Assembly (NCBI GenBank): GCA_964247055.1
Contig: OZ176057.1
Coordinates: 4,650,001-4,714,000 of the forward strand
Direction: 5' to 3'
Origin: Paragordius varius
Taxonomy: Eukaryota > Animalia > Nematomorpha
Length of the DNA stretch: 64,000 nucleotides
In this document: in pieces, positions 17,032 to 41,772 of the stretch
How the letters are laid out: the number at the start of each line of letters is the position of its first letter
How positions within the stretch are numbered: position 1 is the first letter of the stretch
The notes under the pieces: model-generated
Database searches by the model: none
Seen by the model: the letters and a program-made list of their open reading frames with translations, nothing else
Told to the model about the DNA's origin: nothing
Made by a program: the position numbers and the translations under genes

Positions 17032-19497
17032 ATGTTGATTAACGGCGCCAATTTGAATTTATTATTCATTATTATCCTCAACATTATAATTGGCGTTAGG
17101 GAAAAAGGGGTAGCTCTAAATTCTACAAATTCAATCAAATTATCCATCGCTTCTTTCTTAAACCAAAGTCAAAACAGTCATAAATACATGCGTGAAATTA
17201 TTAAACCATTTCACCTTGAAACTATTTTAATAAAAACAGGACAAAATTTTAACAATATGACACCGCCTATTATTGCTAACAAAAGTATAATGGGCTCAAT
17301 CAGAGAATGTAATAATCAACATGTTTGGATTAACTCTGGTCCGAGGGTGCAAAAATTATGTGTGTTGTTATTCAAAGGAGAGCCAGGAAAGAAAAAATTA
17401 TTATTTTATTGGATAAATTCGGCAGAGTTTCTTTTTACAAAATTTAATTATACTAATGCATTTCTCTATTACCCTTTTAATTATGTGTCTCATTATTATA
17501 ATTACTACGAAAAAAGTTATGTGGAAACATTAAATAATCTTACAATAGACACAAATAGTGAGTTTCCTGAACATAGTTTTGATGAATTTTTTCGCAAAAA
17601 CCTCAAACACAAAAGAGATATCGCAAAAAGCCATAAGGCTAAATCATTTCAATACAATGCCAATGACACATCTTCTCGTTTAATGATGCTATCCAATACA
17701 ACGCCTCTTTACTCTACTAAATTTATTAGTAATAATCATACTACCAATTTAACTGTTAAAAATTCTGCCCGCACCGATTTGCAAAATAACGGAACAATGA
17801 CCAACGTAAGTTTATTAGTGAAACAAGGTGGTGCCGATAACACGTATGGTTATAATTTAAGCACGCGTCAACGGATAACGTATATACTGGCACGAAATCC
17901 TAAAATTAGATATGCCCGTCACATATCTATCATAGCTTATTCCATACTGTTTGCCTTTGGGGCCATGGGAAATCTTATGGTCCTTACTAGTCTTTTATGG
18001 TTTAATCGAAGATCATCGCCATCATCCACAGTCTTTAAAATGAAATATACACCCCCCTTCCCATCGTCCCATTCAACAATCCGAATGTCAAAAACTGGTG
18101 CGAACATGGTGAACAGAAAAATTTGTTTGGAAACGTTGCCACACCTAAACAATGCAAGGCATCATCAACATTTTTATAAAAAGGGTAGCCATTTACGGCA
18201 ACCTGTAAAGCTTGTTATGAATAAATGTTCCCACCTCCCAGATACCCGTAGTTTAGGTAAGCAAAATAATCATAATAATGATATAGATAGTTGCAATATT
18301 AATAAATCTTTAAATATTACTCATAATGGTATAAGGTCAACAATAATGGTTGAAAAACTCCCCATTAATCCTTATGAAACCATTAATGAAAGTAATAAAG
18401 AACAAAATTTTAACCAGAGAAGTACGGTAACTTTTTTAAGTAATACTTTTAATGAAACTAATTGTATCCTTCCTTATACAAATAATAATAACAAAAATAA
18501 AGATTCAAAAAGTGGACATTCCTTTGTTGATTTACAAAAAATGTTACTTAATGGTAACACTTGCCATAATGAAAAAAATAATTTGTCCAAAAATAATTAT
18601 TCAATAACGACAAACATTCAAAATGAATTGTTAAAAAGGAGATCCTCTTTTGGACTAAGCAATGATGATGTATTACACATTAATGAAAACAACATTATTA
18701 ATAATCTTACCAATTCTAAAATAATAAATAAAAATAAATCTAAAAATAATGGGACACAAAACTATCAATCATTGCAAAAAAACTCAATACAAATAGACAA
18801 AATTGAGAATGAAAATACTTTTAGGCCAAATTTGTCTCCAAATTTTGATAGAAAAGACGATACAAATATCGCATTAATACCAAAATATCATAGGATAGAT
18901 ATAAATGCCAATATAGATGAACTTTTTCCATTAATTTCGCCAAAACAGACAAATAAATGCTCATCTGAGACTGAAGTAATCAATTTAGTACAAAACACAA
19001 CGGTTAATAATAAAACAGACATAATTCCTAACGAATTTCAACAAATTAATATGGTAAATGATTACCGGTCTAAGAAAATAGGCCCCTCCCTAACCAAATA
19101 CTCATCAATAACCACAAAGTATGATGGTGAAAAGAAGATCCCAAGAAAAATACATAAAAACAGTCAAAGTATTCGAAGTGTCAGTCGAACCCAAAGCCGG
19201 GTTCGATTACTTATTCTACACCTGTGTATTTCGGATTTACTCGTCATTTTTTGCATGGTGCCCCTAGAGCTAGGTTGGGTCATAACCATTTCATGGACGG
19301 CCGGGCCATTTGCATGTCGATTTTTAACGGTTTTACGTATATTTGGTCTGTATCTAAGCTCCTTAATTCTCATAGTCATAAGTGTCGATAGGTGTTACAC
19401 AGTGTGTCACCCCCTGCGATTTGAACAGCAAACTAAATTGGTGTATGTTATGTTATGGGGTGCATGGATCATAGCCACAATAGCTAGCTTACCCCAG
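17032..19497 (+). CDS. GnRH/AKH/ACP-family class A GPCR, exon 1 (N-terminus, TM1-TM4)
   Basis: ORF 17032.. contains TM1 (ISIIAYSILFAFGAMGNLMVL), TM2 (LHLCISDLLVIFCMVPLE), ECL1 WxxG..C (SWTAGPFAC), TM3 with DRC motif (ISVDRCYTVCHPL) and TM4 (WGAWIIATIASLPQ). Phase-0 donor CAG|GTATTA at 19497/19498. The ATG at 17032 is the most upstream in-frame start; the true start is unverified. Confidence 0.92.
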
Positions 19498-22400
19498 GTA
19501 TTAATACTTTTCTCCCTCAAACAATGATGAATTGATTTTTTCTTGGGAAATATTTTTGTCAGGTTCGAAAATATGTTTTAGACACATTTATTTTTTAGAG
19601 GTATTGACGAGGAGTGTATAATAATTTTAATATGTTATCATGTGTGAGATGGAAAGATTGAGGCATATATTTTAAAAGGTTTTTTTCTAAAATTAACTTA
19701 AAGGCATCCAGTTTTTACCATTGAAACATTATTATTTTTCCCATAACATAACTCTTAAAGTTATTTTAATTAAATTTTCATCTTCTTAACTATATTTTGT
19801 GTTGACTGTTAATTTATGATATATATGTAATAGCTAGAGCTTTATTCATGACTAATTTATATTTACAGTTAATCAAATGATTTATGATAAAAACAATTCT
19901 AATTAAATATTTATGATTTCAGAGGGACAAATTTTATTTTTGTAGTATAATAACATTAATAATTGTTAATTTAAAACTTACAGTAGGTTTTTAAAGTAAA
20001 TTTTTTAAATTAAATTGTTTAGCGTTAATTTTTTAAGCAGGCGTTCAAATTTCCTTATCAAAATTTCAGAAATTCCTGAATTCTTTTTTCTGTTTTTAAA
20101 TCATGTTGTTTTATAGTGATAAAATGTAATTTTGACATTTTAAACAGTGTGCGGACGCATTCAAGGGCAAGAATTAGCCAAATCCTGTCGGTTAATTAAT
20201 AATTCAAATCATAATTTTTACATTCTTAAAAATTGGTTATTTTACGTGTAAGATTAGTATCACTTTGCTAGGAATATATCAAGTTGGTCCAAAACTTTGC
20301 ATATTTAATAAACAATGCGATTCTTAGGTACAAACTCCTAAAAAATAAGTTAAAGCTGGTGTTGTTGATAAAATGTATACCTAATTAACTGTCATCAAAT
20401 ATTTATCAAAAGCTCCATTTTTCCAATCACTTATAGAGAATAAGCAAAATTTTAAAAATTATATATATATATTTTTTTAAACATTAAACATATTTTATGT
20501 CAGTCAGGTTAGTATAATAAATGATTTTCAACACAAAAGAATTATCTAAGGTTTCCTATTGTCTAATTGTTAATGTAAAATAATGTTTAATAGAGGAAAT
20601 TACAAAAATAAAATTTTTTCCTATACTATACTATAATAAATAAATAACAAAAAAAAATAATTGTTCTATATATTCATTATATATATATATATATAATCGT
20701 TTTTTTAATCATTAATTTTATGTTTAATAATTTAAATAATTTTTTTTTACGTTTTTATTTTAAATTTTTTTTTCATGAATTTTCCAATAAATCAATATAT
20801 TATAGTATAGTATATACGTATGAAGGGGTAGTACTGTGACTTAGAGAATATTTATAGTGTCTAAAAATTTTTTTATCATCTTTAAATAAATCCAAATAGT
20901 TAATAATCTTTTTAATCAAAATTTAGTAGGCTTAATTTCCGATTTCCTTATTTTGATAAATTTATATGCAAATGTATATATTGTGGTAATCTAAGCTCTA
21001 AAAATTAAATTGATAATGTCGAATTGTAGATTATTTTACATTTCAATATTCTTGTGGTGTAAAATACATTGGTATATATAATCCCGCCAATTAAAATATT
21101 TTACATGTATCTTAATTAAATAAATATTTAACATTACACAGTATATAAGTTTTAGAATTATAAATAGCCACAAAATAGTCTAAGAGCCGAATTTCAAAAG
21201 ACATATAATAATAAATAATTTGGAGTACAGATATATAAAAAAGTAATATTTAATTTTACTATACTATTTAATTATAATATTTGCCAATTTTAACTATTAC
21301 TAATTCCAAGAAAATTGTTTTTAAAGGTTAGAAAAATTATTCTCTCTTCTAGAAAACTTTTTCAAAAAATTTCGCCCCATTTTATGTTTTTTAAATATTT
21401 AATATCATCGTTTTGAATACCATTTTTATCGCTTTCATAAGGTATAATAGCATAAAGACACAAGTATTTAAATTTAAAGTCATTTTAAAAAATTACATTT
21501 TCCCATTATATTCTTATAAACAAGTAAATATAATGATTTATTCGATAAAAATAATATACGTAATGGTTTTTATATAATAATAATAAATTATTCAAACTTA
21601 AATAACAAATAAATATTAATTACAGTCGAAAGATCAAAGAATGTTAAATAAATATGATATGAATATTAATTTATTATAATGATTTTTAGAATTATTTTTT
21701 TAACAAATTTTTTTTCAAACATCCAACTACAAGTGGGAAAACTACCAAGATCCAATTAAAATGCATGTTGCATGCAAAGTAAAAGCATGGCATCTTAATT
21801 AATAAGTTTAGTATCTATATTGAAATTCTTTATGCACCACCTATAAGTAATTTTAATTTATTTTAAAAAGTCCATTTAAACTCTATAGCACATTTTTCAC
21901 TGGGGGTAGCTTTATACCACAGAGCTATTGCTCAAATATTATCCTTAAATTTTTCGCCTGAGACTTTAGCTTTACAAAAATTTCAAATTTTAAAATCTTC
22001 ATTTCAAACTTTTTCGCTGCCATTTTTTTCTTTTTGATTTTTTATATGGCCAATGCGGCAAGGAAATACGTGTATATTATGGTTAAAAAGTGTAAATAAT
22101 TGTAAAGCTTTTAAATTACATTTTACAAGATTTTAATAATTATTTATTCTAATATGAGTTGTTTGATTCAATCGTGTTTTGGAGCCCTCTAAATTTGGGA
22201 CTTTATAAGTCCATTCAAAAACTGTATAAACTCTAATTTTTTTCTAATAGGGTAGGAGAGTTTTTGAAGATAATTAAATTTTAAACAAAACAACTTTTAA
22301 AATTGTAGATTACTTACTTTAAGCTCTGGCTTTGCCATTCGACTTACAGAGGCATCATTTTTTAAATTGTCTATATTTTGCCAACATGTTAGCCCATTTT

Positions 22401-24465
22401 AATGTGTTAAATCATTTCCCAATGTTTTAAAGAAGTATCAATGCTTCAATACTTTCATATAATAATCGATTGTAGAATAGTTAGGGCGTAAAAAGCTTAC
22501 ATTTACGCTTATAATCGTATTTTTGTTAAATAAAATCTCAGGTAACTTGAATATTTCTTTAATATGATGCAAGTCTACACTTTTTAAAAAGAAAATAACT
22601 CTAAAATGCACAACTATTTAGGTCAAACTTTGGTTAAACCACTAACTACTTTGTAGAAAAAGATTTAGTCATGTGTTATATAAATATTGTTGAAAATAAT
22701 TTTTAACTCCTGTAATACTTGTTTAGAAGTAAAATTTTAATTAAAAGGCTACTTTTTTCAAACATTATATATGACCTTAGGTAAATGGCAAAAAAACGCG
22801 TTTAAATGATTTTTAAAAAATAGATATTTAATAATATATATCTAACTTTCGGCTATATTTGTATATTTTTCAGGATAAAGAAAAAAACGAAATAAAAAAA
22901 ATATAACCGAATATTAGATATTTATTAAATAAATTAACTATTTATTTTTAAAAATCATTTATACGCGTTTTTTTGCCATTTATAACTTGATTTATAAATG
23001 CGTGCTTCCTTACTTTTTTCGATTATATAGTTTGATTGAAACATTACGGGATTCTTCAATTTTTAAACCAAAAAGAAACTTAAAACCAGAAAAATGTTTT
23101 GACATATTTTTTTGTGAACATAACAATTTTAAAACGGTCTTTCTAATACATACAGAAATGAAAATGTATTCTCTTATCATTATCTTTCGAATGTAATTTC
23201 TAAATCGTATAATATTATTATTTAAGGACGTCATTTTAGTGTTTATATTAGTTGTGTGAAATTTATGAGGATGGGAACTTTTTATTTTAATATGAAAACC
23301 ATCAAATTAAAAAAACTTACATAATATAAAAATTAATCTGTCAAATTATGTACACTGTTTATTAACTTTTTTATATAAGGTTTGACAAACCTAAATTGTA
23401 AAATTTAGTCAAACAACACGGTATTTTATCAAATACTCAAATATGATTATAAGCTACATGCTAAATAAATTTATTTAAATTTTAGCAAAAATATTAAAAG
23501 GACAAGACTAAAATACATTAATTAATGAACATACACGTTCGAGGATTTTAAAGGAGAAATAATCAACTTCATCTTGCAAATTATATAAATGCTGACGAAT
23601 TCGGTCATGCCGACACGGCGCTCTTTACTATTAATCAGTGGTACTAATGAAATTTGTTTCAAAGACCACCAAAAATATATTTATCTTGTCTCAAGGGTCA
23701 TTCACCATATAACATTAATAAAAATTTCATAGCTAGTTTATCCATTTTCAGTAATTATACCAAAATAATTCAGGGCCGCAAAAAAAGCCCTTTATTATCA
23801 CTGCTTCAAATGGCTTGAGAAGCAAAATGCTTAAGGAAAATATGATGGCCTCTAAGTTGACATATATGACAAAATAATAAATTCTTATATTTTTTTGCAA
23901 ACTTGTGGTGCATAGCATATGCTTTATTAAATTGGCAAGAAATGAAATTCATTGATTATTTAATTAAATATTAACTTAACTAAGGTAAATTGAAAACAAC
24001 TGGACAAAAAATTTTTAACTATATTAATCTGTCAAAACTAATGAAGTTTAATAATTTATTTTTTGGTAGATAAGACTTAACAATTTTTACTATTTCCGAG
24101 TGTTATCCAAAAATTTAATTAACAAAAAAACAAATTTGACAGTTTTTTACAAACACTTGGTTTGATTAATCATATTTTTCACGTGAGATATGAAATAAGA
24201 TATGACTTTAAACTTTTTATATTATATTATTTTAAGTTATTTTCTTTGAAACGTTATCTTAGGTTTGAAATCACAGACACTAGGATTGCATGTTGGCTTT
24301 TGAAATGTTCGATACCATCTTGTTTACTTAATTAATTGCTTTAAGAATCAAAACCGTAAATTATTAACACCATATAATCTTTTGGGGCAATATTATTTCC
24401 CAAGTCATGTAAAATTTTAATATTTAACAAAAGTATAGTTGTTTATATTAGTTATATCTTTAGAT

Positions 24466-26312
24466 CAGTGATACTCAAACCGCGGCCCGCGGGCCGCATG
24501 CGGCCCTAAGAGTACTTTAAAATTGCCCTATGACCAAATAGATACATAAATTATTTTTTTTGATGAATTTTTAAAATACATATAAACGAATTTTCGCGTA
24601 TTTTAATATTAATTTATTTTCTTTAAATTTAATTTTGGTAATTTTTATATTTTCCATTGAAATGTAGAAAAATTTTCCTACATTAAATTGATTTCAAAAT
24701 TTTGGCACACGTAGTTTCTGTTTCTGTTTTTATTTTATTTTCCATTTTAAAATTTTTATTGCATTCCCTTTTTGTAAAGTAAGCCTTTCACCCAAACTTG
24801 CATATTCTTTTCTAACTTACATCATTTGATACTCATTTCCATAAAATATTTTTCAAATCAACATCATTAAATTTCGTCCTGTTTTTTTATAGCATATTCA
24901 AATTATATCATTTTTTTGAAAAAAATTACATAATATTTAAACATAAATTAAAAGGATGACATCTAATGCTAAACGTAAATTATCCGATGAAAATCGCTCC
25001 TTTAAAAGAGAATAGGAAAAAAATTTTTGTCGTTTTTAAAAAATGTTGGTACCTGCTTTATATGTAAGGACCACATAATTAAATATAATATGGAAAGACA
25101 TCTCAATGTGCGCTCTTCGTGAGATTTTGCAACGACAACATAATCAACGGGTATTTATTTTTACCAATGAATAATACCACGAGAAGAAGTAATTTCCTAG
25201 AAATAATTAGCATTTTCGATAATAAGGGCATATCTATGAAATTGGTTTTGTGCACAGATGGGTGTCCCTTTATCATTGGAACAAACAAAGGATTTATTCC
25301 CCTTTTGAAAAACAAATATAATTTGCAAAATATTTTATCCTTTTACTGCTTCATCAGCAACTTGGTTTCGCGTATAGATGAATCACTCAATTCAGTAATT
25401 AAAACGGTTGTGGATAAAGTTAACCACTTCCGTGGCAAAGAATTCAACAGCCGTAAATTCAAAAACCTTCTGAAAAATATCCACAGTGAATTTGACAATA
25501 TTTGTACACCGCTGTGCGATGGCTTAGCCTTAAAGTTTTAGATAGACTTTTTGTTTCAAGGCATGAAATTTATTATTTATAAATGATAACAGAAAGTTTG
25601 ACGAGCAAATTTACAGGCACAAACAGTGGGTTTTATTAGCCTACCTTTGCGACATTACCGCGAGGTTATCATTTAACATTTTTATCTAATGAGATGAAAT
25701 TCAGAATTAAGAAGAATTAAAAATTGCTTAAACGTTGAAAATCCATGGCATATGAATATATCCAATATTAAGCAACTTGAGCATTTCGGTTTTGACAAGC
25801 GCATATCATTGAAGAATTCGTAGATCTTAAAAATGATTTCATGAGGCTATATTCAGGGAAAATCGTGGGAAAGAAAGATATGTAGAGTTTTGGCAAGATG
25901 TGCCAAATAAATGTGAGAATATAAGAAAATGTTCTCAAGTTATTAACTGTTTTTCCTTTAACTTACACGTGTGAGGCGGCATATTCAAAAATGAAGTGTC
26001 AAGAATACATACAGAAATCGCAAAACCGATGATCATATGGACGACGTATTAAGATTATTCTCTCATGAGGCGAAACCAAATTTGTCAAAAATTATTGGTT
26101 AATATCAAAATAAATGTTAACGAAATATTTTAATTTTTTAAATGGTGCAAAACGAGTTTCATGCAATCCGCAAAATATTCATTGTGCTGATTTAGAGTAT
26201 AAATATGTGCATATGTGTCAAATAGCTATGAAATATTTGCCATTGGTTCCTGGCCCTCAAAAAAATAATATATTTTATTTGGCCCGTCAAATATTTTTGG
26301 TGAGTACCACTG
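24466..26312 (+). mobile_element. hAT (Buster/SPIN-type) DNA transposon, internally deleted, in GPCR intron 1
   Basis: TIRs CAGTGATACTCA / TGAGTACCACTG, perfect 8-bp TSD CTTTAGAT with central TA, GGCCC subterminal motifs. Transposase remnants MTSNAKRKLSDENRSF (ATG 24956) and CTDGCPFIIGTNKGF (ORF 25119..25541). Confidence 0.92.
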
Positions 26313-27076
26313 CTTTAGATAATCTCTCTACCCAATCCAAAAGGCATTTTTAAAAGACAGCAAAATCCAGGAATTGTTTAAAAACCTTATATTTTTTGGA
26401 TAGAGAGATATATAAATATTGATAAAAAAATATAACAGATAATGTGGTTCTGGTTTGGGGGCTTAAGAGTGATCAAAAATTGTTATATGCATTTTAATAA
26501 TAGTTTCATATTAAAAAATCGCAAAATTCACTGTATATCAAATAAAAATTTTCGGTAAAAACTTAATGGTCCATATGAATATCGTTAATCATAGATTATA
26601 TTTAAAGAACAAAGCAGTATTTTTAAAAAATTTAAAACATTAGATCCAAAAGCCGCAAAAACCTCAAAGAGCCAGTTTTCTTAGAAAAAATGCAAATTTT
26701 GAAATTGCGGAAAACAATTTCTTTTAAAAATTGCACCCTTTAATTTGATTTTGGCAGGATTTTATGTTACTTCATGATTTTTAAGCATGATAAAATCTAT
26801 ATAAAAATCTTAGAGACGAAGAACATTTAGATCTCCTCAGAATTTCGTTTTAAACGTAGTAAAATTTCAATAAAATTTTGTAAAAATGAAAACACTATAT
26901 CTTTATCTTCATTTGAAAGCAGAATGACATAGCGAATTTAATGGTATAAGTGTTTTTTAAAAAAAATCTCAATTATGTTAAAAAAACCATGAAGCATTTG
27001 CATGCATCAAAAAATTTTGCCAAAAAAAGCAAAGGTAAGGTATACAAAAAAATATTTTTTTATATCAAAACCTGCC

Positions 27077-27339
27077 TATTATGTATCGAATATAACGAAT
27101 CGGTGATGAAAATACAAAACAATAATAATTTATTAAGAATTTCGATATATTTATACTTTTTGATTAATGATAATTTTAACATGCATGTGCGTCACAATTG
27201 TAAGAATATGTCTTTTATTCTACGAATATATATATAAGAATTCCACGAATAATGACGCACAAACATAAACGTGCGATTAATATGAAAATATATGTAAGAA
27301 AATATAATGATGCAACGTTGTAGTATCCACTACATAACA
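27077..27339 (-). repeat. 3' LTR (263 bp)
   Basis: Direct repeat of 31104..31365; about 4 differences counted by eye. Terminal inverted motif TATTATGTA...TACATAACA on +. Confidence 0.95.
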
Positions 27340-30300
27340 TTCTCTTCCTCCTCTACAAAACGCTTCGGCGGTTTTCGAACTCGGTCTGGATACCGCCTGG
27401 GGGCCTCCCCCTGCTCAACATCCGATCTCAGTTGATCGGCATGTTTTCGCATCTCTTTTCCATCTTCATCCTTTACTTCATAGGATAACGGCCCCGTCCT
27501 TACTTCCACCGTACCCGGTCGCCATCCTCTTGATGTCTCGTTCTTTATAAAAACTGACTGATCCGGTGTGAATTCTCTTAAGGGTCTCGGTGGCGTACTT
27601 TCTTTAGGCGTTTCTTTATCTTGCAACCAATTCAACGGTGTGTTGATGTTTCTCTTCAAAAACAACGATGCGGGGGTCGTCTTAATCTCGTTATGCCATG
27701 AATTACGATAGGCCAATACATTATTTAAAGCCTCCTGACTCTTCACGCCAGGCATCATCGTGGAACGGAATCTCGACTTCAACGTATAAATTACTCTTTC
27801 TACCAAACCATTTGTCCTTGGGTGGTAGGGCGCCGACGTCACATGCTTAATGTTCCAGTTTGTCATCTTATCCCGAAAATTGAACGATTTGAAATAAGTA
27901 GCATGATCAGATACTAGCATTCTTGGAAAACCATAAGCGGAAAACCATTTCTCCAATTGTATCAAAATCACATCAGATGTAATACTGCTAAGTATCTCCA
28001 CCTCCACCCATCTTGAGAACGCGTCAATTAAAACCAACCAATATTTACCACACATGGGACCCGCGATGTCCACATGGAGTCTTTCCCATATTCCCACATT
28101 GAAGTTCCATTTATATACCGGATTCTCAGCAACGTTCGCCCTGTTTCTCTGACAACACTGACAGTCGTGTACTAACTTTTCAATGTCCTTATCCATTCCG
28201 GGCCAAAACACCACCGACCTGGCTGTGTTTTTCATAGCAACGATACCCGGATGTCCAACATGAAACCAAGCCAAAATTCGTCTTCGTGCAGCTGTTGGGA
28301 TAACCAACCGATCACCAACATATACGAAACCATCGGCATGTTTGAGATCATTTCTAACGGGTTTGAATGCGGATAATTCCGGTGTTGACCAATCATTATT
28401 TTTAAGTGCCATACGTAGTCGTTTTAACAGTTTATCCTCCAAACAATCTTTTTTGAATTGCGTTTTATTTAAATTTAAATCCACGAATGCGATTTGTCGG
28501 ATTTTTTCGGCCACATATTCATCATCATTGTCTACGGATGTCTGACTCTTTTCGGGAAGTCTTGAAAACACATCGGCCATGTTTGATGATCCCGCAATAT
28601 ATTTCATATCAAAATCATACGCGGCGGCCTTGTAGATCCATCTTAACAATTTACAGTTTTTAATATCACTTAACTTCCGATTGTTTCCGAATAAATGAAC
28701 CAACGGCTTATGATCTGACCAGACCTCACATTTCTGTCCATAAATATAATAATGGAATTTTTCTAAACCAAATAACAAAGCCTTGGTTTCCAATTCAATC
28801 ACAGAATAATTTTTCTCTGCATTCTGGCATTTTCTTGATGCGAATGCAATTGGTACCATTCTCTTATTTTCCATTTGCAGAAGTACAGCTCCAAAGCCTT
28901 TTGTAAACGCATCCACTTGTATTATTGTTTTATTTATGTTATAAGTGGCAAGTAAAGATTCTCTTGATATTAAGTTTTTTGCTTGCTTGAATTCATTTTG
29001 ATGTTCTTGTGACCATCTCCATTCCTTTTTGGATCCTCTTAGTGCATGTAGATTACTAACTTTGATATATAAACCAGGAATAAAACGTTCATAAAAATTG
29101 AGCAATCCCAAAAATGATCTTAACTCAGTTTTATTCGTGTGTGTTGCACATTTAGCAATGGCGTCGAGCTTATCTTGTACAGGACGGATTCCCTGTTTTG
29201 ATAACTCAAACCCCAAAAATTTTATATTCTTCTGATACAGCTTTAATTCATCCGTTCTTAGTGTAAACCCGCATTGTTGTAACTTTGCTAAGGTCTCGCT
29301 CAGATTTCTATCGTGTTCCTCTTTCGTTTTACCAACAATCAAAACATCGTCGAGATAAGCCATTGTGCCCCTGCAATCTTTGAGTACCTCATCCATTATT
29401 CTCTGGAAAAGCATGGGAGAAACCTTCAATCCAAATGGTAGGCGATTAAATTGGAAATATCCCATCGGGGTAGTAATAACTAAATATTTTTTACTTTCCA
29501 CATCCACCGGAATTTGAAGGTATGCGTCCTTTAAATCAATGGACGAGAACCATGTGGATCCCGCACATTTAGATGCGATCGTGTCAAATGTCGGGATAAT
29601 CTGAGATATGTTCTCCATCAAAGAATTGATAGTTACCCGGAAATCAGCACACACCCTAATTTCCCCATTAGTTTTTACGACGTTAACCGTAGGAGTCGCC
29701 CATTCCACATGGTGTTGTGTTGGATCTACGGGACTCACTATTCCCAGGTCTATCAGTCTCTGTATTTCCATCTCTACTTTACTCTGTAGTGCCAATGGAA
29801 TTCTCCGTGCAGCGAAGACTTTTGGTATTGCATCTGATCGGACATACAATTTGACAGGATCACCGTTGTAACAACCCAATTTCCCGTTAAAGAGTTTTGG
29901 AAATCGCTTGAATACATTGTCATGACCATTATTATTATTAGATGTTATTTGATTAACACTCACGTTATCCGGTAAGGTCATGCCACAACCAATGATCCAC
30001 GACAGCCCAAATATAGGAGATAGCTCTTCTTCCGTTACAAAACATTCTAATTTCTTCGTAATATTTCCCATTGTTACATTGACAACTGTTTTTCCCAAGA
30101 GTTTGATTAGGTTGTTTCCGTAGGAAGTTAATCTGGGAGCACTTTTTAGTAACGGTCCTCCCACCGTCTTCCAAACATTTTTATTAATCAAAGAAGCAGC
30201 AGCTCCAGTATCAAAAACCATACTGACAGCTTGGCCATTAATCATAGCGCAAATGTTCGCTTGTGTGCCCCATTTATTATAATTAGCGTTTATATTATCA

Positions 30301-31086
30301 CTATATCGTTTCTTATGGCGACACATTGCCTGAAAATGATTTTTTTTATTACAATTGTGGCATATTTTTCCGAACGCGGGACATTGTTTTGGTATATGCG
30401 ATTTACCACATTTGCTACATCTCCGCTTCCATTTATTATTATTGCCATCACCATTTTTTTTATATTCCATATTATTACTCTTATGATTATTATTATTATT
30501 ATTATCATTCGACCGATTCTTTTGAATTTTAAGGATACTGCTTGACGACACATGGGAGGCAATATCGGCCCTTGCAAGTTCCTGAGCCAAGGCCATGTCG
30601 ACAATGGTGGTTAATGACACCGCCTTCCCATCACACTTCGCATCGGGGAATCGTGAATAAAGATCCACTTCCAATGATTGCAAGTTTAATCCAGCCACAA
30701 AACTGTCTCTAATTCTCTCCTCCACCTCTGTTTGAAATTCAGCCTTTTCCGCCACACTCTTGACTCTTTGCAAAAATTCCGTGAATGTTTCTCCATCATT
30801 TCTCCGCAGCAAACTCAAACCTTGCAGCGAAGACAGACTTGGCAGGTGAGAAAAGTTTAAGACCAATGTCATGAATTTTAGACCAAGGAGCATCATCAAT
30901 TGATTCCGGAAAAATCATTGTTTCGATCTTATTAATTGTTTTAAGACCAGCTCCAGCCAAAAACAGTACTTTGATATTATCATCATTAATATCAACATTT
31001 TTGGAGATCATAACTCTTTTGACATATCTGATATAGGTGGCAAAATCATAATTGTCATCGTATCCTTCGATTGAAATTTTATCCAT
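27330..31086 (-). CDS. gag-pol polyprotein with one frameshift in gag (~30805..30812)
   Basis: MDKISIEG... (31086) runs to ARFEF, then shifts frame into LRRNDGETF. Downstream: CCHC knuckles (CHNCNKKNHFQAMC), protease VFDTGA, RT (SIDLKDAYLQ, YLDD), RNase H, integrase (H..HPG...C..C, HVDIAGP, VSDHA, NGLVER). The stop lies inside the 3' LTR. Confidence 0.93.
27340..27354 (-). promoter_or_regulatory. Polypurine tract AGAGGAGGAAGAGAA
   Basis: All-purine run directly abutting the TG of the 3' LTR. Confidence 0.85.
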
Positions 31087-31087
31087 C

Positions 31088-31100
31088 GTCTTCGTCGCCA
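31088..31100 (-). promoter_or_regulatory. Primer-binding site TGGCGACGAAGAC
   Basis: Starts with TGG 3 nt inside the 5' LTR. The TGGCGACGA core is common in Mag-type elements. The gag ATG (31086) follows almost immediately. Confidence 0.85.
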
Positions 31101-31103
31101 GAA

Positions 31104-31365
31104 TATTATGTATCGAATATAACGAATCGGTGATGAAAATACAAAACAATAATAATTTATTAAGAATTTCGATATATTTATACTTTTTGATTAATGATAA
31201 TTTTAACATGCATGTGCGTCACAATTGTAAGAATATGTCTTTTATTCTACGAATATATATATAAGAATTCCACGAATAAGGACGCACAAACATAAATTGC
31301 GATTAATATAAAAATATATGTAAGAAAATATAATGATGCAACGTTGTAGTATCCACTACATAACA
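31104..31365 (-). repeat. 5' LTR (262 bp)
   Basis: Direct repeat of 27077..27339, followed on the - strand by TTC and the PBS. Confidence 0.95.
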
Positions 31366-31809
31366 CTGCCTTATATTAAAATTAGTTTATATCGGCTTTT
31401 CATATTCATTTTAAGAATACTAGCCCATTGGCAAATAAAAAAATTATTCTGAACCCAAGGCTAATTGCAAAATAAACATATGTTTTTGCTTTCCCAATAA
31501 CTTTAAATTATATATTTTTATGATTTTTTTGATATGAAGCATTTCCCTTAACATGTGCGCAAATTTTGCGATATTACGATATTGAACAGTCAACTAACTT
31601 TTTTAATTCAATCGCAAGCATCAATACAAAAGATTTTAATGAGCATGATACGTTTTTCTATCAATATATATTTTCATCAGGATATTTTTTTATGGTCATT
31701 GGAGGCAATATATTTATATATATATTGTCATAAGGCATCGATTATGTTTCTATATAAATTATCTTATTTTGAAATTAGGTTATTAAAAATTTTATTTATC
31801 ACATATTAG

Positions 31810-32275
31810 GCCTACATCTTTCATCTCAAAACACATCCAACTTTAACCTGGTTCGAACAATGCGTAACGTTTGATAGTTTCCCCACTCCGACCCATGAAT
31901 TAATTTATAATCTTTTTTCAGCAACTGTTATGTACATCATACCGCTCATAACTGTCATCACCTGTTATTCTATAATTCTAGTCCGGGTTTTAAGGAGAAA
32001 TCACAACTTGGAACGTTTACAATTCAAAAACGAAGGATCTCTTGTAAGTCAAAACACGTCCCCCCTGTCATTTGCTCCAAAAGGTAATGTAAGCAATGCA
32101 AAAATGTTGAACAACACAGATCCAATAAAACATATGGTAGAAAGCCCTAATGGTTCCCCCAATAATTACTATGACGACTCAAAACACATATCATTGATTT
32201 CGAGGTTAAATCAAAACTACAATAATTCCTATCAAATGGGTCACAAAATTGCCAAACAATATTCCCCTGATCATG
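31810..32275 (+). CDS. GnRH/AKH/ACP-family GPCR, exon 2 (ECL2, TM5, start of ICL3)
   Basis: Acceptor ATTAG|GCC at 31809/31810 continues SLPQ in phase 0 into AYIFHLKTHPTLTWFEQCVTFDSFPTPTHELIYNLFSATVMYIIPL, the AKH/GnRH-receptor ECL2-TM5 signature. In frame with track ORF 31930..32286. Phase-1 donor G|GTAAAA at 32275/32276. Confidence 0.92.
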
Positions 32276-33480
32276 GTAAAAAATAGTAATGTGGTTAATA
32301 TTTTTAGCAAAACAATTTTATTTCGTTTTCTTATGCCAAATTATTCAAGATAACCATTCTTGTGTTAATATAAATTGTCCATTTTTCTATTTATTCATCA
32401 AAGAATGTAAAAAAATTAAAACTCAAATATTATTATCCAATAACAATTATTAAAATTTTATAAGACTTAACCTTGGATAAGAACCCGAACCCTAATAAAC
32501 AATTCTCGAAAAAGTAATATTTTAATTTATTTCAATTAACTATGGATGTTAGCACCTTACATTGCTGACACTGTAATATCCTGATGAAATCAATATTTTA
32601 CTATATAATCTATGAGGATTTCATAGTGCTTTTGATTTTGAGCCATAGGAGAAAAAAATACAGTTTGCTAATTGTTCCATATAGAGCGCATGCTCATTAT
32701 TTTTTGGGGTGAAGGTTGGAGGCCTCATTAAAAATATTTTTAGATAATACGATAAGCTACCTCTTTAAGGAAAGTTATTTTATTAAAGTATAAATTTAAG
32801 ATGTGGGCTACGAAAGTTTATTAGTACTTTTATTATGTAAAAAAACGGAAGAATTTCCAGATTGCGCGAGAAATTTTTATTGGCATCAAAAAAAATATTT
32901 TTTAAAGTGCTTTTGCTCAAAAACCTGATTTTGGCAAAAGTATGCTAATAAGTATCCCGTGAATTTTTTAGTATATTAAATATACCTATTCTATTTAGTA
33001 TGATTTGCTGAACTTTTCTACCACCTCGGATATTCTCCATTCTTAAGTTAATTTTTGGTAAATAGACAAATAAAAAAATTCAAAGAAGAAACAATCTGAG
33101 ATTAAATTAATGTTCGGCATTATCGAGTTATATGGATAAAGTATTGTTATAGTAGTATTAATATCGTTTTCAACCTCCAAATACGCTTTAATAAGATCGG
33201 TTAAAAATTAAAGATTTCTCAAAATAGGCATTTTTTCACTCATCAAGCATAACATGGTTAACTCCTTGGCTTTGATGGGTTTAAAAAAGCAAGACGGGTC
33301 TAAATTTTGCGAATTTTTAAAAATTAATATTTATAATTAACATAATAAGGATTTATTAGTGAAATTGATTATATATATAGTTAATAAAGGAGCATCTTCA
33401 CCATTAGTTTACGTATTACATATAATAAGCTAAATTCTTTGAGAAAATTTAAATTTTTTTTATCAATCATTGATATATTT

Positions 33481-34127: not shown

Positions 34128-35227
34128 ATAAACTTATATCAATCACCTCAAAAACGGGAACATTACGGAAATCTGTTCAATTTTCTGGTCAGGATGGTAT
34201 AGTAAGCAAAAATGGCCATTTAGAAAACCATACATTGAATATGCTGCCCCATGCGATGTTAGCAGAAAAGGGCAGAGTTAAAAAGGCACTGTCAACTATT
34301 TCGCACGAGTTGTCCCCTATCGTTGAACATGGAAATATATCTTTGAAATCGAATCCGCTCATTCAAAAAAGCGCTGTGAATTCTTCGGATGCTAAAGGCA
34401 GTATCGCGACATCTTACGTTCTATGTCCCAAGGATTCGCCTATTAAAATGGCGAAAATAGTGCATGAACCAGAGGGAGAAAGCCCCCATATCATGTATCA
34501 TAATTCTTTGATAGAAAACAGTAATATATCTTATAAAGGTAACAACCATCGACCAAGAGCTAATCTATCAATTTCTTTAACACCATCCTATGAGTTATCA
34601 AGCTCTCCCACAATCGAAAATGCAGACCCTAATGATGAGGAAGAACGTATATCGTCATTTACTCAAAGTTCCGATACAGTAAGTCTTGCTAATCCTTATA
34701 ACAAAAGTCCAATATCTCATCGGAGCTATGATCAACGTTTTACATTTAATGAGTTTCAACAAAGGAAAAAACCTTCATCGGAAACTAATAAGTTGTCTCC
34801 TTCTGCAGAAGTCAGTTATCAGCTTGGTGGGCAAGGATCAAGCCCAACCACATTTTTTAAGGCACTTGGTCAACAATCCCGGAGACGATTAAAACGGTTC
34901 ACAAGTACACAAAAACGTAAGCGAATCAAACTCCTGAATGAGGCCACTCGAAGCAATTTAAAATTAATTAAAATGACTGCCCTTATCATAGCCGTATTCA
35001 TATTCTGTTGGACGCCGTATAACATAATGAGTTTTTGGCACTATTTTTCCAAGGAAACGGCCCAAAAAGTAAATCCTATCGTCCAACGTATCCTATTTAT
35101 TTTTGCCGTTTTTAATTCTTGTTTCAATCCACTAATCTATGGCTTGTTTAATGTTAATTTAATTTCAAGTGCCTTAATCCGTGACTACTTTAACCATCTC
35201 AAACGTCGATGTTTACCATATTGGTAA
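34128..35227 (+). CDS. GnRH/AKH/ACP-family GPCR, exon 3 (rest of ICL3, TM6, TM7, C-tail)
   Basis: Acceptor CTATAG|AT at 34127/34128 is phase-1 compatible and open into ORF 34235..35227. TM6 MTALIIAVFIFCWTPYNIMSFW (CWxP) and TM7 FAVFNSCFNPLIYG (NPxxY). Stop TAA 35225..35227. Confidence 0.92.
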
Positions 35228-40402: not shown

Positions 40403-41772
40403 GTTTAGTGGATGGTAAAATCTTTGATACCAAAACTATTATGCCATTGGCAAAAGACGACACTGAAACAAGAAATGATGATCTTAATATGAAAAATTTA
40501 TTATCATCAACTATCAGTTATTCAAATATAACTTCAACGTTGGACAGTAATGATAAAAATTATTTAAATGACCATGTAATCGTTTCAACTGACGAATCAA
40601 GCATTATAATGGATTATAAAAATATATATAATAATGAAAACAGTACTAACATGAATATAAATGATGAGAGCCCTAATCCAAAGGAAAAAAATATGGGCAA
40701 ATCTATTAACCGTAAAAAAATGCAAAAAAGGAAAAAAATAGCGACAAAAAAGAACAAAAAACAAATGGCGGCTTTGAGAAAGACAAAAAAATTTGCTATG
40801 TTATCAGAAGATGTATCAGATCCATCTTATATCGATGTAATTGAAAATCAGACACCTATGCAAGTGACAGGAGAAACCATGTTTGAAATACATCATATTA
40901 GTAATGGTGATATAGTCCCCGATAATGGTTTACCAAATAATTTTCTCAATGATCCAAAAGACTTGGAGTCGGAACCTAGACATCATGGCCACAAGGGCGA
41001 TAAAATGCTTAATAATACACTATTACCGGTCCCAGAAAAAAATAATGATATTAAACTAAACAATGTTACCGATGTCAAAGTAATTAATGATAGTAATATC
41101 TTATCTAATGAAAATATCTCTACAAATCTATTAGACAACATAAACGGGAATGTTAAGCCAACAATAAATAAGCCAAGCAATGTCGGAAATATCGACGGGA
41201 CGATAATTAGCAAATTAAGCCCTTTGCAATACACGGATTATAACAATTCAGCCGTAATCGATCTTTCAAACCCCAATAATTTTAAAAATCGATCTGAGGA
41301 AGTAATTTTAAATCCGAATTTCTTTAATACCAATTTCACTACCTTAGTGCCAAAAACTAACAACGACTCTTACATTGTAAATGACATAACATTTGTCAAA
41401 AAAGATATAACAGAGAAAGATTTGCTAACAAATAATATGACAACAATGTTAAATCGGATAGTATCGCAACAAAATTCCTCCCCATCAACCACAGAGAACT
41501 ACTTGATTAAGTTAAATTCAACCGAAGGCACAGTCCTTACCACATATAATATTAAGAGTATTGGCAAAATGGCTAATACAAGCAATTCAAAGGAAGGAGT
41601 TTCCATGTCAAAGAATGGGGTTATTGAAAATTTAATTTCGAACCTATTAAGTTGTCTGAAGATATTAGGCATATCCGAAGGGGAAACCAAGTCCATTAAC
41701 GTGACAAATAGAGGAATTGGAAATTTTACACTGTCATGCCCGAATGTTACTGAAACCCAAGTTCATTTATAA
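40403..41772 (+). CDS. Orphan secreted Asn/Ser/Thr-rich protein, exon 2
   Basis: 454-codon open frame bounded upstream by an in-frame TAA at 40396. Acceptor ATTAG|GT at 40402/40403 matches the phase-1 exon 1. Joined product is 490 aa with many N-x-S/T sequons, a Lys-rich block and 2 C-terminal Cys; no recognised domain. Confidence 0.75.

Follow-up and report, generated by a model that had tools for sequence, protein, structure and literature searches.

The window analysed here comprises 64,000 nucleotides of the horsehair worm Paragordius varius (assembly GCA_964247055.1, contig OZ176057.1, positions 4,650,001 to 4,714,000 of the forward strand; coordinates below are those of the window) and carries on its plus strand a gene for a class A G-protein-coupled receptor (GPCR) of the GnRH/AKH/ACP type, where ACP stands for adipokinetic hormone/corazonin-related peptide. 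The first intracellular loop (ICL1), which is normally a rigid six-residue turn between the transmembrane helices TM1 and TM2, extends in this receptor over about 390-394 amino acids (18013..19194), as placed by alignment, hydropathy and motif positions. We consider it likely that this loop is a translated, disordered and lineage-specific insertion of about 390 residues in an intact receptor, which carries it as tolerated filler. A previous inspection of the DNA letters without database searches, referred to below as the sequence-only reading, had proposed an ICL1 of about 400 residues at 18001-19200; our analysis moved the boundaries slightly, and its residue counts were right. A literature search on long or large ICL1s in GPCRs returned no relevant paper on giant ICL1s in class A receptors, and giant ICL1s are already present, without comment, in public protein records of Gordionus.

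In the translated gene, WFNRR starts at residue 323 and SRVRLL at residue 722, and the distance from N1.50 (residue 314) to D2.50 (residue 735) amounts to 421 residues. As a reference, we measured this distance in the 150 top-ranking proteins of an exhaustive search, in the members of their clusters and in three P. varius receptors including the window gene, and obtained values of 26-35 residues (mode 28) for 136 of the 146 measurable sequences, nearly all of which are close relatives. With 421 vs. 26-35 residues, the window receptor lacks the short ICL1 that is canonical for class A receptors and is represented by F61-T66 in the beta2-adrenoceptor (PMC10033409). The loop is rich in Asn, Ser and Lys (N 16%, S 10.5%, K 9.5%, I 8.8%) and has a net charge of about +25. 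Its 390 codons contain no stop in frame 0, the remaining five frames contain 15-69 stops, and none of 20,000 mononucleotide shuffles stayed open (mean 31.6 stops, minimum 14). For the central 275 codons, the probability of an open frame was 3e-12 by base composition and 4e-6 by codon-position-specific composition, which excludes a constitutive intron whose frame stayed open by chance. The argument of the sequence-only reading that such a long open frame speaks for translation was borne out to the extent that chance openness is excluded and that four further long ICL1s are open as well (see below); translation of the loop is strongly implied by these data.

The gene surrounding the loop appears from its sequence to be an intact three-exon class A gene of the GnRH/AKH/ACP(/corazonin) family, in agreement with the earlier assignment to the GnRH/AKH receptors, which is backed by the matches to solved structures, the nearest named relatives and the tree. 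Each exon was searched separately. The Pfam profile 7tm_1 matched residues 718-826 of exon 1 (E 2e-17), exon 2 (E 2e-5, profile positions 137-189) and exon 3 (E 4.5e-16), and the three exons together cover profile positions 13-260. The profile gave no match to TM1, which was located through alignment and hydropathy. The best solved structures were the human and related GnRHRs for both TM2-4 (E 9e-18) and TM6-7 (E 4e-18), followed by the vasopressin V1a and oxytocin OXTR receptors, and the nearest named proteins were the Aedes ACPR, a Procambarus GnRHR/ACPR-like receptor and the Haliotis GnRHR2. In the tree, a quick IQ-TREE run, the receptor nests among GnRHR/ACPR types, apart from the outgroup receptors of the P. 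varius genome. The seven helices are all intact, and so are all class A motifs in the translations, namely GN (N1.50), SD (D2.50), DRC, LWGAW (W4.50), CWTPY and NPLIY, together with the Cys of the second extracellular loop (ECL2) in WFEQCV.

The loop lies within exon 1 (17032..19497), which is part of an open reading frame (ORF) of 831 codons without a stop (17032..19527), exceeded in length within the 64 kb only by the frame of a retrotransposon polyprotein; the GC content is about 25% across the whole window. The exon starts with a hydrophobic segment at residues 2-22 (17035..17097, Kyte-Doolittle peak 2.14), a possible signal peptide that may be cleaved, followed by an N-terminal region of about 275 residues with 13 NxS/T sites, so that the whole stretch upstream of TM1 comprises about 300 residues. 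TM1 (17926..18012) is of the normal type: it covers residues 300-322 by alignment and hydropathy (peak at residues 300-318), contains N1.50 in GNLMVL and aligns with TM1 of the relatives. The next hydrophobic segment, TM2, starts only at residue 727; TM2 with D2.50, TM3 with DRC and TM4 occupy 19195..19497, as supported by the 7tm_1 and structure matches and the alignment. Within the loop, the highest Kyte-Doolittle mean over 19 residues was 0.28 vs. 1.8-2.4 for the TM helices; no hydrophobic segment was found there, and hidden TM helices were ruled out by this maximum.

Exon 1 ends with SLPQ followed by the donor GTATTA at 19498, a phase-0 boundary immediately after the PQ motif of TM4 that is common to Gordionus. 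The codon after PQ encodes V (GTN) in 42 of the 45 relatives whose ORF ends shortly past this motif, as expected because the ORF would continue into an intron there. The human GnRHR shares this boundary; a literature search on GnRHR exon structure gave no result. Intron 1 (19498-31809) is followed by exon 2 (31810..32043), which begins with AYIFH, encodes ECL2 (WFEQCV) and TM5 and probably ends at the donor CTT|GTAAGT at 32044, as deduced from the phase and the size of the Gordionus exon 2. Exon 3 (34193..35227, acceptor ttctggtcag|G, phase 0) encodes the rest of a long third intracellular loop (ICL3), TM6 (CWTPY), TM7 (NPLIY), a short tail and the stop codon. ICL3 is inflated, too, with about 265 residues in total (34193-34925). 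As a separate observation, the frame of exon 2 runs open for 80 codons past the strong donor-like site at 32044, up to 32286, with a GC content of 35% and an AT skew of 0.25; the stretch 32044-32286 represents either a longer exon 2 with an alternative donor near 32277 or a second case of an open frame beyond a donor in the receptor gene.

Long ICL1s were also present in the orthologues and in a paralogue of the window gene. The two best matches of the exhaustive search were tandem genes of Gordionus sp. m RMFG-2023 (CAK9300041.1 and CAK9300042-44.1). The window receptor shares 64% and 59% identity in TM2-4 with the Gordionus proteins P0001 and P0002, and the identity to Gordionus P0152 amounts to 63% for exon 2 (residues 388-449 of P0152) and to 62% for exon 3 (residues 603-708). 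The tandem genes have N-to-D distances of 160 and 161 residues and loops of 135-136 residues. A paralogue in the P. varius genome (L002), which is 47% identical in TM2-4, has an N-to-D distance of 186 residues, and its Gordionus orthologue (XP_065324001.1, P0153) one of 121. Each of the four long ICL1s (L002, P0152, P0001 and P0153) lies within a single exon 1 and has an open frame; the other frames contain 2-20 stops each. In Gordionus, this exon is contiguous, and the loops were included in the coding sequence by BRAKER/TSEBRA and, for P0153, also in the RefSeq XP model. Because the Gordionus models were made by BRAKER1/2 and TSEBRA with RNA-seq hints (10.1101/2023.06.26.546503), they provide weak evidence against the use of introns in these loops. 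IQ-TREE supported a clade of the window gene with P0001 and P0152 (100), a clade of L002 with P0153 (97) and the union of both (83), which together with the long ICL1s suggests that the trait is probably older than the duplication and than the divergence of the two genera. P. varius also has two near-identical copies of a GnRHR-like receptor that is more distantly related and in which ICL1 is normal (L003 and L004 on G000:C3, at 5.66 Mb and 5.93 Mb); L004 is split into ORFs of 261 and 202 residues, and this copy may be broken.

Similarity of the window loop to those of Gordionus was undetected both pairwise (z 0.2) and by profile (39% of the shuffles scored as well), and a small "PLIS" island in the MAFFT alignment was rejected as not significant. 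The loops of the Gordionus tandem pair are 40% identical, with an omega of about 0.42 vs. 0.07 in TM2-4, as roughly estimated by the Nei-Gojobori method, with dS close to saturation. The window loop itself turned out to be unalignable to the Gordionus loops. Between L002 and P0153, the membrane-proximal end of the loop is conserved (z 8.9). By these comparisons, the loop appears to be fast-evolving and weakly constrained at best, with its membrane-proximal ends better kept.

Searches for a folded domain or a foreign origin of the loop were negative. No folded domain was detected by Pfam (no family at E<=10), by Atlas (no look-alike, best score 0.79 with low recognition) or by AF2 from the single sequence (mean pLDDT 33.5). 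Within the 110.6-Mb assembly, the DNA of the loop occurs only once, and it contains almost no dispersed repeats and only three tiny TRF arrays (scores 31-41). Neither a target-site duplication nor a terminal inverted repeat was found at the boundaries of the AT-rich core described below. A transposon origin was ruled out by the single-copy DNA and by these boundaries, and a recent microsatellite expansion by the near absence of tandem repeats. An exact look-up of the ORF gave no match; word-index searches of proteins with the full ORF and with residues 700-831 were likewise empty, which is accounted for by the length filter and the sampling of words. In a metagenome contig of a small animal, a GnRHR-like gene (L016 180-262) contains a 74-nt intron exactly in ICL1 after VLVIIIR, and the ORFs of several further relatives start just upstream of TM2; an ICL1 intron therefore seems to be present in part of the GnRHR-like family, and one may speculate that exonisation of such an intron seeded the nematomorph insertion.

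The window receptor is not a singular invention, but the extreme for ICL1 within a habit of loop inflation across the P. varius genome. A Pfam search of the whole assembly with subsequent hydropathy and motif mapping added two giant ICL1s in unrelated receptors. Overall, four of about 15 measured class A receptors, belonging to three subfamilies, carried giant ICL1s, approximately 11 others showed normal distances of 28-29 residues, and other loops were inflated as well. An NPFF/NPY-like receptor (L033 448-2163; G000:C5 near 1719356) and a galanin/kisspeptin-like receptor (L037 94-2469; G000:C5 near 5603406) have N-to-D distances of 299 and 177 residues, respectively, each in a single open exon. 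A further peptide receptor (L014 4013-6340; G000:C4 near 11551372), encoded by a single open frame of 775 residues, combines a normal ICL1 with an ICL3 of about 270 residues and a second intracellular loop (ICL2) of about 165 residues, as counted from DRH to W4.50. Across the P. varius receptors beyond the window gene, inflation affects ICL1, ICL2, ICL3, ECL2 and the tails. The view that a long ICL1 is exceptional for class A GPCRs accordingly holds for nearly all relatives, in which the loop is short, but not for P. varius itself.

We propose that an ICL1 of approximately 100-160 residues was already present in the common ancestor of the P. varius and Gordionus lineages, and that the AT-rich, Asn-rich core of 275 codons would have been added or grown later in the lineage of the window gene, as part of the genome-wide inflation of GPCR loops and tails at about 25% GC. 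Its amino acid sequence would drift almost freely while selection holds the reading frame: because the loop precedes TM2-TM7 and shares its exon with the first of these helices, any stop or frameshift would kill the receptor, and selection on the receptor alone suffices to keep the frame open without conserving the sequence. The loop most probably serves as a long, flexible tether in the cytoplasm that links TM1 to the remaining helices. Such a linker may be tolerated because ICL1 begins and ends on the cytoplasmic side of the membrane, so that the packing of the helices need not be disturbed.

The first 85 and the last 39 residues of the loop are encoded at an exon-like GC content of 39-40% and carry net charges of +13 and +7, whereas the core between them (18257..19081, 275 codons) has a GC content of only 24.7% and contains 21% Asn. 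A likelihood fit with two change points placed the low-GC block at 18263-19064, with 2-lnL support intervals of 18240-18274 and 19047-19082. The A>T skew of the core is +0.227, compared to at most 0.096 on the positive side, and 0.196 as the largest absolute value, in 207 non-coding windows of 825 nt; another Asn-rich ORF in the window shows the same skew. The codon usage of the core is best in frame 0 (P 0.002 vs. the non-coding windows). We conclude from this coding-like strand composition that the core is probably a lineage-specific coding addition that has relaxed to mutational equilibrium.

Several observations weigh against a translated and nearly neutral filler. The GC content of the core is also intron-like, and its edges coincide with a good donor and an in-frame AG, which makes part-time splicing possible. 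The exon-like GC content of the flanks and the omega below 1 of the Gordionus loops indicate that the loop is not wholly neutral. The branch of the window gene is long (1.08 vs. 0.18-0.28 for Gordionus), which could mean relaxed constraint. The low confidence of AF2, which was given one sequence, provides weak evidence for disorder. Finally, a 250-residue query matched only Gordionus, Pycnogonum and one Logan fragment, with no transcripts of the same species among the matches.

Among the alternatives, we examined the possibility that the central 825 nt (18257-19081) are an exitron, yielding isoforms whose ICL1 comprises either about 125 or about 400 residues and which perhaps differ in coupling, trafficking or desensitisation; on the present evidence, we regard this as unlikely. 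The splice-site pair named in the sequence-only reading does exist as described, with AG|GTAAGC (GT at 18257) and ATAG|GC (AG ending at 19081) flanking a GT...AG unit inside a coding exon. Its length of 825 nt is 3x275, both sites are in phase 1, and their joining would restore a Gly codon. The donor TAG|GTAAGC fits seven of the nine consensus positions, as do only two other sites in the loop, but the acceptor is weak, with pyrimidines at only seven of the 18 upstream bases vs. 12 of 18 at the real acceptor of exon 2. The GC content falls from 39% to 22-25% exactly at the candidate sites, both of which lie within the change-point support intervals; yet the sites were chosen post hoc among 49 AG dinucleotides. 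The short form would approximate the Gordionus loop length of 135-136 residues, and the open frame suits an intron that is also translated, but the strong A>T skew and the frame-0 codon usage of the core are coding-like and unlike introns. Moreover, the strong donor-like site at 32044 likewise precedes 80 open codons, so that an open frame past a donor occurs elsewhere in the gene.

The second alternative holds that the loop is a selected functional module, acting as a phospho-regulated scaffold, a carrier of trafficking signals or an autoinhibitory tether that controls the access of G-proteins or arrestin. It would be consistent with the retention of a long ICL1 in two paralogous receptor lineages and two genera, with the omega below 1 in the Gordionus tandem pair, with the exon-like and positively charged flanks of the window loop and with the conserved membrane-proximal end in L002 and P0153. 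In addition, the mammalian GnRHR's first intracellular loop is reportedly tied to cAMP signalling, going by the title of a 1998 paper by Arora et al., a reference of PMC3431540. Against such a module stand the undetected conservation between the window and Gordionus loops and the negative outcome of the Pfam, AF2 and Atlas analyses. The motif matches in the loop, three basic-x-S/T sites and one acidic dileucine, are at the chance level for its composition, and unrelated P. varius receptors are equally inflated in ICL1, ICL2, ICL3, ECL2 and tails, pointing to a cause in mutation or tolerance. A regulatory role of the loop is thus possible but unsupported, and the selected module appears quite improbable to us; the scaffold or phospho-regulatory domain suggested in the sequence-only reading found no backing in a family match, in conservation with Gordionus or in a confident fold.

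Recent descriptions of the autoregulation of GPCRs by ICL3 offer a parallel for a bolder version of these ideas. The ICL1 of horsehair-worm receptors could be a long regulated cytoplasmic arm, which an exitron switches between about 125 and about 400 residues and thereby alters G-protein or arrestin access or trafficking. If true, this would amount to a novel form of GPCR regulation via ICL1, similar to that by ICL3, but we consider it very doubtful. That the receptor is decaying or disused and the loop is junk in a dying gene is highly improbable: the long terminal branch, a young LTR retrotransposon within intron 1 and the lack of same-species transcripts among the matches of the 250-residue query would fit such a scenario, but the approximately 1240 codons of the three exons contain neither a stop nor a frameshift at 25% GC, all class A motifs are intact, the TM regions are 59-64% identical to Gordionus and the retrotransposon is intronic and antisense.

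This retrotransposon is of the Ty3/gypsy order and is located on the minus strand at 27077..31296, antisense to the receptor gene. Its LTRs (27077-27269 and 31104-31296) are 193 nt long and 99% identical, and its intact ORF of 1189 residues contains protease, RT, RNase H and integrase domains. The element has a GC content of 33-39%, compared to 25% around it. Downstream of the receptor gene, an Asn-rich ORF of 454 residues (40408-41772, plus strand) shows an A>T skew of 0.226, which is equal to that of the loop core.

Compared to the arthropod and mollusc GnRH/AKH/ACP receptors and the vertebrate GnRHR, the window receptor shows the same class A motifs, the same phase-0 intron after the PQ of TM4 and its best structure matches, but differs by its N-to-D distance of 421 vs. 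26-35 residues, its ICL3 of about 265 residues and its N-terminus of about 300 residues. The Gordionus receptors share the layout in which exon 1 alone encodes TM1, a long ICL1 and TM2-4, and the far too long ICL1 itself; their loops are one third as long, have an exon-like GC content of 33-42% and lack detectable similarity to the window loop, and the genes contain an additional intron near TM7. Intact and apparently selected receptors bear 100-400 extra residues in ICL1, in at least three subfamilies within P. varius and also in another genus. Should the full-length proteins be produced and be capable of signalling, TM1 would need no tight covalent turn to TM2, which bears on GPCR folding, on the engineering of split receptors and on the choice of sites for fusion partners.

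With exitrons, the core of the loop shares its position inside a coding exon, the GT...AG ends, a length divisible by three and the open frame; it differs by its weak acceptor and its coding-like strand composition. Asn-rich low-complexity insertions between conserved blocks occur in very AT-rich genomes such as those of Plasmodium falciparum and Dictyostelium, and the window loop appears analogous to these in being a fast-evolving insert rich in N, K, S and I, without homologues, between the conserved blocks of a gene in an AT-rich genome. The P. varius receptors may also serve as a clean natural system for how far AT-biased mutation inflates the loops of membrane proteins before function fails. 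Unlike the Plasmodium and Dictyostelium insertions, the window loop is not homopolymeric and is almost free of tandem repeats, and few features of class A GPCRs are as constant as the length of the loop that it occupies.

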